From Perkinsela sp. CCAP 1560/9 (taxonomy: Eukaryota; Protista; Euglenozoa: Kinetoplastea): DNA of 64,000 nt. The stretch spans positions 806,001 through 870,000 of the forward strand of contig CBFFSA010000003.1 of assembly GCA_965644495.1 (NCBI GenBank), given 5' to 3'. This document shows, piece after piece, positions 39,682-51,876 of this stretch. Positions within the stretch are counted from its first letter, which is position 1; every line of letters begins with the position of its first letter. The notes under the pieces were generated by a model, which was given only the letters and a program-made list of their open reading frames with translations, ran no database searches and was not told where the DNA came from. A program made the position numbers and the translations under genes.

Positions 39682-39896
39682 TTCCCGCGGGTATCCATAA
39701 AACGGCTTTTACAGTATAACCCAAGGGCATAAAACGTCGCTGTAGTAGTTGCTTCGTGAAAAAGCGGTGGTTTCACGCTTTTGGTGCACTGGATATGATA
39801 ATCCAGGAGTCCCGTTTACCAACAAACACCGCTTTTTCTACAGCGACGTTTTATGCCCTTGGGATATAAAAGACGTTTTAGGAATACCCGCGGGAA
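39682..39896. mobile_element. MITE (TA|TTCCCGCGGGTAT...ATACCCGCGGGAA|TA) enclosing a solo IS30-like end at 39781-39807
   Basis: Arms include CCCAAGGGCATAAAACGTCGCTGTAG and its complement. Confidence 0.8.
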
Positions 39897-39971
39897 TATA
39901 ACGTGAGTGTTTCGAGCTCTTGATTCGTTGTCTTTTGGGGTGGAAGGAGTACGAAGGCCTAATTCTAGATG

Positions 39972-40627
39972 CCTGGATTATCAGATCCCGTGCACCAACA
40001 TTTTCGAATATCCAGTGCACCAAAAACGTGAAAAATGAGGCCTTTTCAGTGTCAGATATTTTCATGATTTGAAGCCCAGCTTTTCATTTACTCTTTCGTG
40101 CTTCGAAAATTTCGTTCCATTGTGATAGTGAAAACTTTATACTTCTTAGTCCCTTGATAATTTGGTTCGCCACTTCTTCGGCATGTTTGGATTGTGCAAC
40201 ACGCAGAACGAGGAATCGGCTCTTCCGTTCATACAAGTTTTCTTTATGTGGCGCTCCACGGGTCCAGAGATCATCTGAGGGCGCACAGTCTTGTTTTCCA
40301 AGCGTCGTTTGGAGTCTATGAGCGCCACTGGCCTCGTACCGCCGATCCCGTTTTTTATTGCAGGCCAGCTCATGGCTAACCGTGCTATGGGATTTCCCGA
40401 TAGCCGTGCCGATCTCACATCTCGTGGCTCCCGCCTCGAACATTTATTGGATAATACGCCCATCTCCTTCATCGACATGTCTACATTTTGTCATGGAGTA
40501 AAAAATCGAGTACAAAAAATAGGAGTCAAATTCCAAAATTTGACTTTTGGTGCATTGTATATGAAAATCCCAAACCTTTTGGTGTCCTGGGTATGATAAT
40601 TTGGTGCTTTGGATATGATAATACACC
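39972..40627 (-). mobile_element. IS30-like element, internally deleted copy B
   Basis: Same TIR motif as 49717-50870; peptides EIGTAIGKSHSTVSHEL and ERKSRFLVLRV..SKHAEEVANQIIKGL. Confidence 0.88.
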
Positions 40628-48887: not shown

Positions 48888-49568
48888 ATGCCTATCGCCT
48901 ACGATGCTCGCCGGATCTACGTTGGGAATCTTCCGGAGCATGTATCCGAGAGCGAATTGATCGAGTGTTTTTCTTCACATGACATCCCAATTCATGACAT
49001 TGAAATCGCACAGAATGGGTATGGAGATGGAACCAGTCGTGGCTTCGCACATGTCTCTTGTTCCACAGAGATGGAAGCTAATTCATCCGTAAACAAACTC
49101 ACTGGGCTTCGATGGTCGTGGAAAAATTCGCACAGACAATCCCAGTACACACGCGGTCGCATGAATCAAGGGCTTAACGTGCAGATTGCTCAAACACATT
49201 GGTCGATTCGCCGACAACAGGCTCGGGAAGAAGAGACAGAGACTTTGGTATCTACAAAAAATGAACTACCTATCTTTAGCGGAGAATTGCCTCAACCTGG
49301 ATTGACAGAATACCTACCCCATATGGCGGATGACGGAGAATACCTAGATGCGAATTCTGTTGCAGAAAACTCGACTGCGCGATTCGATGAGGATACTGTA
49401 AGGGAGGCTGTGTCACCTCTACCGCTCTCATCCGATGCTACTTCATCGAAAATTAAGAAGTCGAAGTTTTCCGCGAAAACTGGTAATCTAAAACCATCGG
49501 GTCTGAGTCCTGGCTTAGAAAAGTTGCTTCAGTTAAAGGAGCAGCTAGCTCGCCTAAAATCAAAATAG
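48888..49568 (+). CDS. RRM protein (NOL8-like N-terminal RRM)
   Basis: RIYVGNL (RNP2) and RGFAHV (RNP1). Confidence 0.85.
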   Translation: MPIAYDARRIYVGNLPEHVSESELIECFSSHDIPIHDIEIAQNGYGDGTSRGFAHVSCSTEMEANSSVNKLTGLRWSWKNSHRQSQYTRGRMNQGLNVQIAQTHWSIRRQQAREEETETLVSTKNELPIFSGELPQPGLTEYLPHMADDGEYLDANSVAENSTARFDEDTVREAVSPLPLSSDATSSKIKKSKFSAKTGNLKPSGLSPGLEKLLQLKEQLARLKSK

Positions 49569-49716
49569 CATTCCCTGATGTACCTAGTAAATGCTCCTCT
49601 TTCCATTTCTCTTTGACCTAGCGAACCTTCAGTGCCTAGTCTCCCTTGCGCCATTATTTTCCAAAGCAATTCGTACTTCTTAAATTTTTAAAATTTATTT
49701 GATTGCATACGGATAA

Positions 49717-50870
49717 CCTGGATTACCATATCCAGTGCACCAGCATTTTCGCATATCCAGTGCACCAAAAACGCGAAAATTACATCCCGTTCCAGGTGTC
49801 AAACATTTTCTCATATCCAGTGCACCAAGAATATTAAAAAAAATGAACCTAGTACGATGATTGGTATATTTTTCAATGGTTTGCCCGTTGGGCCGTTTGT
49901 TCAACTTCTTCATTGTCTTGTTCACCTCTTTGAGGCTCAGTGTCTCAAACGACTCACTCGCCTTGTGATATTGGCGAATGTTGGTAAGACCATTTGAATT
50001 TTCCACCGCCCCCTTTTACCACGAGTGATACGGGGCACAGAAAAAGGATTTACAGCCCAGCTTTTCATTCACTCTTTGATGCTTTGTAAATTCCGTTGCA
50101 TTGTCATAAGTGATAGTAAAAGTTTTGTACTTTATTAATCCCTTGATGATTTGATTCGCCACTTCTTCGGCATGCTTCGATCGCAGAACACGCAGAACGA
50201 GGAATCGGCTCTTCCGCTCACACAAGGTCAAAATGTAACGTGAGTGATTATGCCCTTCCACTATGCCTGCTTCCCAATCCCCATACCGACGCCTCTTGTT
50301 GACTATCTGAGGGCGAAGTCGGACGGAGACTCTGTTGGGGATCGTTGATCGGCCGCGGTTGGGTCGACGCCATCACGTGCCACGTGGCGATAAATAGTAG
50401 CCACAGACGGCGAAGCTTGCGTCCCAACAACTAAAGTGTTGGGAACCTGTTCTGGACTGAAGCTGCCCTAAGCGCTCCTTGATGTGGCGCTCCACGGGCC
50501 CAGAGATCATGCGAGGGCGCACGGGCTTGCTTTCCAAGCGTCTCTTGGATTCTCTCTGAGCACGGCTGGCCTCGTACCGCCGACCCCGTTTTTTGTTTCG
50601 GGCCAGCTCACGGCTAACGGTGCTATGTGATTTTCCGATAGCCGTGCCGATCTCACGTCGCGTGGCCCCCGCCTCGAACATCTCTTGTATTGTGCGTCTC
50701 TCTCCTTCGCTGAGCCGCTTATACTTTGTCATAACGAAGGTAGGAAAAAAATTGAGTAATAGAAATGCCTAAATTGAATAAGTAAGTTGAATATGTAAAT
50801 TGAAATTGTAAAAATGTACTTTTGGTGCACTGGATATGATAACTTGGTGCACTGAATATGATAATCCATC
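49717..50870 (-). mobile_element. IS30-family transposon, copy A (1154 bp, frameshifted transposase ~49850-50732, TAA TSD)
   Basis: HTH YKRLSEGER...EIGTAIGKSHSTVSRELARN; core GDWE, LTLCERKSR, ITYDNATEF, CAPYHSW.KG..ENSNGL, LNKRP. TIRs TGGATTA.CATAT.CAGTGCACCA; TAA at 49714-16 and 50871-73. Confidence 0.92.
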
Positions 50871-50938
50871 TAACCCTGATATACGAACCGCATCTCATGT
50901 TTCCTCACTTTTACTAGAACCATCCCCATTTCCACCCC

Positions 50939-51649
50939 ATGGCCTCCCCTCCCACCGACCTCGACACCCACAGCCTCATCACGGAGTCGATTCATCCCCC
51001 GAGTAGCCGGGATGAGATCACCTCACTCTTCGTGCGTACCCTCACCTACCCCCTCTACGTGTTACTCGTGCTGTACTTTTTCGCAGCGCTACTCCAGCGC
51101 TCGTACTACCCGAATCTTGCGTTAGCGCTGAGTCAAATCGCCGCGGCTAACCCCTACGTGTGGGGAGCCACAGGCGCAGGTCTCGCGGTGGGGTTTTCCA
51201 TCTTCGGGGCCGCGTGGGGTATTTTTACCGCGGGCTCCTCCATCGCGGGGGCCTCGATTCGTGCGCCTCACATTCGATCGAAAAATTTAATTTCGGTTAT
51301 TTTTTGTGAGGCCGTAGCGATCTACGGGGTGATTGTCGCGATTGTGCACACCAGTAAAATGGAACTCCGGGAGAATAGCCTCACGGATGCGATGAGCAGT
51401 TCATCCGCGATGTCCCCGCAGACTACGGCAAGCGGGTACATGTTGTTCTGCTCCGGACTCACGGTGGGGTTGGGGAATCTCGCGTGTGGTATTGCGGTGG
51501 GGATATTGGGCTCGGCATGTGCGATAGCGGATGCGGCGAATCCGGCTCTCTTCGTTCACGTGCTCGTGATGGAGATCTTTGCAAGTGCTTTTGGTATTTT
51601 TGCTCTTATTATTGGTATTTTACAAGCACAACATGCAAAATTTAAGTGA
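50939..51649 (+). CDS. VMA16: V-type ATPase proteolipid subunit c'' (21 kDa)
   Basis: GAAWGIF..GSSI.G..IRAP.IRSKNLISVIFCEAVAIYG and EIFASAFG motifs. Confidence 0.96.
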   Translation: MASPPTDLDTHSLITESIHPPSSRDEITSLFVRTLTYPLYVLLVLYFFAALLQRSYYPNLALALSQIAAANPYVWGATGAGLAVGFSIFGAAWGIFTAGSSIAGASIRAPHIRSKNLISVIFCEAVAIYGVIVAIVHTSKMELRENSLTDAMSSSSAMSPQTTASGYMLFCSGLTVGLGNLACGIAVGILGSACAIADAANPALFVHVLVMEIFASAFGIFALIIGILQAQHAKFK

Positions 51650-51876
51650 TCTACACAAATATGTTCTAGCGTGTTCTGCTTGCTTGCTTGCTATACGTTT
51701 GTGCTGTATGGTAAGTTTTAGAACGCAAAGAGGCACTCCACAACACAAGTAAGATTTAAGCGTCGAATACTTCTATTGGGTGTGAAAGGTTCGTATTGTG
51801 TCTTTTTGTATCTTAGCTTCATCCTACCTTAGTCTTCGTTTAGTATTATACTTGCTACATTTCTTATACTATTTTT

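Follow-up and report, generated by a model that had tools for sequence, protein, structure and literature searches.

The window analyzed here, a stretch of 64,000 nucleotides (C3:806001-870000) within a 1.33-Mb contig of a 21-Mb assembly that comprises 110 contigs, contains, on the minus strand at positions 49717-50870, a 1154-bp element that we identify, with a probability of roughly 0.9, as a decayed, non-autonomous copy of an IS30-family DNA transposon lineage resident in the nuclear genome of a kinetoplastid-type protist. Copies of this lineage are present in all states of decay, and one of its subfamilies, denoted B, recently inserted at seven or more sites, each time with a 3-bp duplication of the target. 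The lineage inserts with a 3-bp stagger, has precise ends and a conserved catalytic core, and has multiplied in place. The window element itself is an ordinary dead copy, and the interest rests in the lineage.

The element is bounded by terminal inverted repeats that were detected by an inverted-repeat search at 49717-49742 on the transposase 3' side (CC + TGGATTACCATATCCAGTGCACCA) and at 50845-50870 on the transposase 5' side (...TGGTGCACTGAATATGATAATCCA + TC). The repeats proper (49719-49742 and 50845-50868) are 24 nt long and 92% complementary, or 26 nt when the outer dinucleotide is included. The window element belongs to family A. Other copies start at the same CCTGGATTA, and the terminal pattern has 37 matches genome-wide versus 0 for the reversed control. 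Immediately outside the ends lie two copies of TAA (49714-49716 and 50871-50873). Because the 3-bp duplications of subfamily B occur at exactly the same register in 7 of 7 copies, with bacterial sister elements giving the same register in 4 of 4, TAA/TAA is a genuine target-site duplication. A 16-nt subterminal motif, CATATCCAGTGCACCA, identified by sequence comparison, is reiterated at both ends, with three direct copies on the plus strand (49727-49742, 49752-49767 and 49812-49827) and two copies on the minus strand at the opposite end (50823-50838 and 50845-50860). An Rfam scan of the window yielded no matches.

The outermost two bases of the protist elements are direct rather than inverted repeats, CC...CC in family A and GG...GG in subfamily B (L036-L043), unlike the bacterial sister elements, in which the outer dinucleotide is truly inverted (GG...CC). 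In the window copy, 49717-49718 read CC and 50869-50870 read TC; CC stands on this 5' side in those other family-A copies in which the corresponding end was examined. The CC...CC flanks of family A could be taken for a 2-bp 'CC' duplication, a reading ruled out by the variable 3-bp duplications that lie outside the invariant GG...GG of subfamily B; given this register, the dinucleotide is part of the element.

Between the ends lies an IS30 transposase pseudogene (49889-50732, minus strand) that joins an HTH_38 domain to a DDE/rve core, as delineated by domain and NF033563 profile matches, with its remains spread over three frames of that strand. The segment 50373-50732 matches HTH_38 (E 3.8e-15), 50016-50261 matches rve (E 6.4e-7) as well as positions 142-224 of NF033563, the IS30 model of NCBIfam (74.3 bits), and 49695-50006 matches the last 36 positions of the same model, that is, the C-terminus. 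Taken separately, the pieces score 74.3, 18.8 and 17.3 bits, and 49890-50369, when read through the breaks, scores 151 bits over model positions 102-265, the cut-off of this IS30 equivalog model being 80 bits. The motifs GDWE, TLCERKSR, TYDNATEF, PYHSW, ENSNGL and LNKRP are all found. Membership in IS481 or IS481EU was considered as well and finds no support: the fragment that scores 74.3 bits against the IS30 model reaches 23.6 bits against the IS481 model NF033577, far under its cut-off of 224.

Lesions were called against C1:2978592-2980055, the closest full-length relative, which is 92.8% identical where the bases align and itself carries a 2-bp deletion near the start codon. The window copy has a 2-bp deletion (50459/50460), a 58-bp deletion (50371/50372), the change of WEAD to WEAG that replaces the invariant Asp of WExD with Gly, a TAA stop (50016-50018), a 6-bp insertion (49980-49985) and a 209-bp deletion (49888/49889) that removed the last ~17 codons along with the 3' non-coding segment. 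The deletions explain why this copy is only 1154 bp long, compared with ~1464 bp in full-length family-A elements. With its coding capacity lost, the copy is dead. The original prediction, made from the nucleotide sequence, had described a frameshifted IS30-family element at 49717-50870, with ~26-bp ends and TAA on both sides, between RRM and V-ATPase c'' genes; model score, domains, motifs, inverted repeats and 3-bp duplications, together with RRM_1 and ATP-synt_C matches in the neighboring genes, reproduce this description, including the outer dinucleotide.

The assignment to IS30 is supported by comparison of the window element and its intact genomic relatives with the known family, and it rests on the model score, domain order, spacing of the catalytic residues, inverted repeats and 3-bp duplications. 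The N-terminal HTH_38 domain is followed by the DDE/rve core, as in IS30. In an alignment of intact proteins (seven sequences), D174 (WExD) and D228 (YDNG) are invariant and Glu262 (VExxNG) is found in six; 33 residues separate D228 from E262, a spacing that we take to be the DD(33)E signature of the IS30 family. The inverted repeats, 24-26 nt long and conserved across copies, are within the IS30 range of roughly 20-30 bp, and the 3-bp duplications fit the IS30 range of 2-3 bp. There is one ORF, and the intact protist elements span 1424-1464 bp versus the usual ~1.0-1.25 kb of IS30.

The family is widespread in this genome. The element DNA has 76 matching places, and NF033563 has 96 matches on many contigs across the 21 Mb, of which at least 15, spread over at least 12 contigs, span the entire model in stop-free open frames of 315-388 aa. 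In several subfamilies, intact transposases of 315-362 aa retain the N-terminal HTH and the DD(33)E core. The intact genomic relatives score 239-253 bits against this model (positions 1-266/267). In pairwise comparison, the proteins fall into two clades, with ~40-44% identity between them, and each clade consists of several subfamilies at 52-74% identity. For L031 and L044, dN/dS = 0.08, and dS is saturated for deeper pairs; where measurable, this ratio implies that the transposase was kept functional through the diversification.

Subfamily B provides the most direct evidence of transposition. It consists of seven 1424-bp copies (1420 bp plus GG at each end) on six contigs (L036, L037, L038, L039, L041, L042 and L043), which are 97-98% identical to the query copy, and four of them code for identical proteins. 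All seven have perfect 3-bp duplications, each different from the others (CTT, GGA, TAC, CCT, GAT, TTT and GAC); the chance of seven such triplet matches is approximately (1/64)^7. The similarity among these young copies ends exactly at the terminal repeats, and their flanks are unrelated. Judging from the sequences, the family is probably still active in this genome. The claim of the original prediction that the element was amplified by transposition is thereby borne out, with the 96 model matches, the differing flanks and the all-different duplications as the evidence; the checks that it named gave 76 DNA matches, at least 15 uninterrupted frames and 7/7 duplications.

Family A is older. Its duplications are kept in the window copy (TAA/TAA) and at C3:1105057-1109614 (ATC/ATC), and the flanking triplets are unmatched in three of the five two-ended copies (one keeps 2 of 3 bases and two are unrelated), which may fit either age or inter-copy recombination. 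The copy at C3:1105057-1109614 spans 4.56 kb because ~3.4 kb of other DNA are nested between the transposase remnant and one end. The copy at C1:2978592-2980055 is flanked by AAG and CTT, which are reverse complements and form no direct repeat, an arrangement that may stem from inversion or from recombination between two copies. Two further family members in the window that had been noticed earlier are confirmed by sequence match: an older copy with internal deletions but both ends kept (39972-40627, plus strand; blocks with 83, 82 and 76% identity), which is now flanked by two different triplets, ATG and ACT, and a solo terminal repeat (39781-39807, minus strand) that matches exactly over 24 nt and also has the outer CC. 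The solo end and the deleted copy (39781-40627) are 165 bp apart. Bacterial IS30 targets its own inverted repeats, and, by analogy, such self-targeting could contribute to this clustering.

The closest known system is bacterial IS30 (ISfinder; NF033563), specifically a clade from Verrucomicrobiota (Akkermansiaceae, Verrucomicrobiae and Opitutales). The protist elements resemble it in having a single transposase with an N-terminal HTH_38 domain, a DD(33)E core and a full-length equivalog match, as well as ~25-bp inverted repeats that start with GGYGGATT, 3-bp duplications and compact size. They differ in the host, here a eukaryotic nucleus, in protein sequence (42-49% identity), in length (1424-1464 bp versus ~1210 bp in the bacterial sisters) and in the 2-3 reiterated 16-20-nt subterminal motifs at each end, which the bacterial sisters examined lack.

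No bacterial relative exceeds 49% identity, with a Verrucomicrobiota-rich clade at 42-49% and the best named relatives, encoded in Verrucomicrobiota genomes, at 42-44%. In trees built with FastTree (164 sequences) and IQ-TREE (LG+C20, 60 sequences), the protist sequences form two exclusive clades with support of 99-100 and long stems (0.46-0.55). Both adjoin the Verrucomicrobiota-rich clade in a larger group (support 98 / 94 in FastTree / IQ-TREE) that takes in IS30 transposases of Verrucomicrobiota and other bacteria; the union of the two protist clades is weakly supported (SH-aLRT 76). Four copies of a bacterial sister element (L090-L093), each ~1210 bp long, come from the uncultured Verrucomicrobiae genome CAWCAA010000002.1. 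They carry 3-bp duplications in 4 of 4 cases (CTG, ATA, GTT and TCC) and have a single repeat per end, without reiterated subterminal motifs, and their ends start with GGTGGATT, the terminal octamer of the protist elements (GGCGGATT, CC/GG-TGGATT). The common octamer and the 3-bp duplications provide independent support for the relationship between the protist and bacterial elements. A search of IMG/VR for viral relatives found none, and it gave no evidence for a giant-virus vector. We infer that bacteria akin to the present-day Verrucomicrobiota carriers of IS30 were the source of these elements, which then diversified in the protist lineage; a single acquisition is possible, and so are two. 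The claim in the original prediction that a bacterial IS30 was acquired is likewise an inference: the trees place the protist clades beside the Verrucomicrobiota-rich clade, at only 42-49% identity.

An alternative to acquisition from such bacteria is that the protist elements represent an old, wider eukaryotic superfamily, vertically inherited in Euglenozoa or beyond, overlooked and, perhaps, already catalogued. The deep diversification, with saturated dS, the long stems, and the reiterated subterminal motifs that are absent from the bacterial sisters examined are all compatible with such antiquity. Nevertheless, the protist clades nest inside the bacterial IS30 diversity, beside one particular clade with which they have the terminal GGYGGATT and the 3-bp duplication in common, and there are no other close relatives in protein databases, including NCBI and UniRef. 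Moreover, a survey that queried 430 eukaryote genomes with every IS family recovered only IS607 (Gilbert and Cordaux 2013, PMC3673617), and the Merlin element of Bodo saltans and Perkinsela was reported in 2021 as the first kinetoplastid DNA transposon (Lopes et al. 2021, PMC8101967). On the evidence of the trees, these protein databases and the two published reports, we consider a long vertical history in eukaryotes rather unlikely.

The concept of a eukaryotic branch within a prokaryotic IS family is already embodied in IS481EU, IS3EU and Ginger. IS481EU and IS3EU come from IS481 and IS3, whereas the protist proteins score 253 bits against the IS30 model. The description of IS481EU as the eukaryotic branch of IS481 does not mention IS30 (Kojima and Bao 2023, PMC10045372), and in the Ginger paper IS30 figures only as one of the integrase-like bacterial transposase families. 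IS607-like sequences integrated in protist and fungal genomes have been attributed to horizontal transfer (Gilbert and Cordaux 2013, PMC3673617). IS607, however, employs a serine recombinase and lacks terminal repeats and duplications, so that its transposition in eukaryotes could not be demonstrated; the protist IS30 elements have both, and these show transposition directly. Merlin, like the elements described here, is kin to a prokaryotic IS family (IS1595) and inhabits non-trypanosomatid kinetoplastids, but it belongs to a different superfamily and its copies are few and degenerate, in contrast to the approximately one hundred IS30 copies here, some of which are intact or near-identical.

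In agreement with the original prediction, which knew of no eukaryotic IS30 group, none is described in the full-text literature searched, the coverage of which is incomplete, with Repbase and Dfam outside its scope; the papers retrieved for IS30 in combination with eukaryote, kinetoplastid, Repbase or IS607 all dealt with bacteria or with unrelated subjects. On balance, we lean towards the view that an IS30 group in eukaryotes is truly undescribed. With similar reserve, we propose that these elements constitute a new eukaryotic DNA-transposon group, 'IS30EU', the first IS30 lineage found to propagate in a nuclear genome, derived from Verrucomicrobiota-like bacteria, with ends reshaped by subterminal motifs, and probably still active in a free-living protist of kinetoplastid type.

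Propagation within the protist has to be weighed against repeated independent imports, whereby each subfamily would be a separate recent transfer, with little or no multiplication in the new host. The two protist clades are indeed only ~40-44% identical to each other, about as far apart as each is from the bacterial relatives, and given the weak support for their union (76), two acquisitions are possible. Within each clade, however, the subfamilies group exclusively, at the support and with the stems given above, and the near-identical copies with duplications indicate multiplication in place. Furthermore, in a collection of 5.8 billion proteins, the only proteins with >50% identity come from the ENA assembly ERZ24900291, and an exhaustive profile-free search agreed with this. 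That assembly represents the same organism: it includes a contig with 100% identity to C2:177866-184649, and other contigs in it carry kinesin, PIG-P, HSP90 and reverse-transcriptase genes. Serial import of the subfamilies is, accordingly, quite improbable.

Segmental duplication of one ancient insertion, as opposed to transposition, is still harder to maintain as the source of the copies. Flanks are common to C2:1198823 and C13:99907, and to C13:95879 and C2:1194821, so some duplication of TE-bearing segments does occur; but the flanks of the seven young copies and of most family-A copies are unrelated, similarity stops precisely at the terminal repeats, and the 3-bp duplication is a different one for every young copy. 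The original prediction had set copies with shared flanks against transposition: two such pairs exist, and the seven young copies are not among them.

The chromosomal setting of the window element is eukaryotic. It adjoins the RRM gene and the V-ATPase c'' proteolipid gene, making up 84% of the 1370-bp spacer between them, and is antisense to the gene cluster; the window also codes for YTH, PP1, XPG/FEN, zuotin, a TYW4-like protein and RPN6, all in uninterrupted plus-strand ORFs, and other IS30 copies adjoin kinesin, PIG-P and HSP90 genes. The reality of the junctions was checked with contigs assembled independently from public runs (three samples, one study) and aligned to 48900-51700. The left junction is crossed by 40 nt in a 5.4-kb X1 contig and a 6.6-kb X2 contig, and the right junction by 46 nt in 909-nt X1 and X2 contigs and a 189-nt X4 contig. 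In these bridging contigs, 0.6-0.9% of the flanking sites differ from the window, which points to another strain or haplotype with the same insertion, in keeping with a copy that is old and fixed. The flanks of the paralogous copies at C1:456.5 kb and C1:2978.6 kb are matched by loose ends in these runs. Residence in a eukaryotic chromosome, as originally predicted, is corroborated by the 1.33-Mb contig with its eukaryotic genes, by the contigs crossing both junctions and by a spliced-leader-like join at the V-ATPase gene, described below. The notion that an IS30 of a co-cultured bacterium was misjoined into a protist contig, which might be entertained because bacterivorous protists are sequenced along with their prey and the contig names in ERZ24900291 are typical of a mixed or meta-assembly, is effectively refuted by the independently assembled contigs bridging both junctions (left X1 and X2; right X1, X2 and X4), the position among eukaryotic genes, the spread of about a hundred copies in every decay state across large contigs, the duplications consisting of host DNA, and the ≤49% identity of all bacterial proteins.

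The spliced-leader-like join was observed in a contig of run X3, in which 23 non-genomic letters (AGATACAGTTTCTGTACCTTGTT, containing ACAGTTTCTGTAC) are joined at 50917 (window 50893-50938), at a point that immediately follows a pyrimidine tract and AG and precedes the V-ATPase c'' ATG by 22 nt. We take ACAGTTTCTGTAC to be the 3' portion of the spliced leader that is conserved in kinetoplastids; run X3 thus appears to be RNA, and the host appears to trans-splice in a kinetoplastid-like manner. The end of the IS30 element is 47 nt upstream of this trans-splice acceptor.

Bacterial IS30 transposes through HTH-mediated binding of the ends, DDE-catalyzed strand transfer and an intermediate with abutted ends. 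By analogy, the HTH domains of the protist transposase would bind the terminal repeats, and the DDE site would cut and join DNA, probably via an intermediate with abutted ends, with integration at a 3-bp stagger. The reiterated 16-nt subterminal motifs are putative additional transposase-binding sites that may be bound as well, and a family-wide Arg-rich linker could act as a nuclear localization signal. Expression in the host would probably occur via polycistronic read-through and trans-splicing rather than from a promoter of the element. The window copy inserted into the spacer between the RRM and V-ATPase c'' genes, duplicating TAA, and lost its coding capacity later. Among the young subfamily-B copies with interpretable flanks, a small sample in which the ORFs are unverified, four of five are co-oriented with neighboring long ORFs: L036, L037, L042 and L043 have such ORFs on both flanks, and L039 is in the opposite orientation. 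Copy orientation may bear on read-through expression, the sample being too small for a test.

Known links between prokaryotic and eukaryotic transposons include IS630-Tc1/mariner, IS1595-Merlin, IS5-Harbinger, IS256-Mutator, IS3-IS3EU and IS481-IS481EU. IS30 would join these links with unusually direct evidence, namely, perfect duplications in near-identical copies. It also implies that a bacterial transposase of the copy-out/paste-in type is able to work on nuclear chromatin, which bears on the limits to prokaryote-to-eukaryote transfer of mobile DNA. Kinetoplastids have long been thought to lack active DNA transposons. Given their polycistronic transcription and trans-splicing, an element would need no promoter of its own, and such promoter-free expression is a testable reason why a bacterial IS could become established in kinetoplastids. 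An intact, compact (1.4 kb) and apparently active element is, in addition, a candidate genetic tool with which kinetoplastid-type protists could be mutagenized by insertion.

In clade II, an automated search for inverted-repeat ends found none for L031, L044 and L049; clear ends were detected only for L032, as arrays of the GCACCCTTATCTGTCATA motif. In this element, inverted GCACCCTTATCTGTCATA arrays are present at both ends (540-800 and 2400-2450), with 860 inverted 20-mer pairs, far more motif reiteration than in family A. The clade II transposases of L031, L032, L044 and L047 share RPxLLxDSSQE, a conserved C-terminal tail that, in this comparison of protist proteins, clade I lacks and that could be a host-interaction or regulatory motif. 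Compared with L032, L033 (reverse strand) has a ~558-bp insertion in the transposase 3' region, at ~2307-2865, which starts with ATAAAGATACAGTTTCTGTACCTTG, the same spliced-leader-like sequence as on the V-ATPase transcript; this insertion may have arisen by retroposition of an SL-bearing sequence or may be an element associated with the SL.
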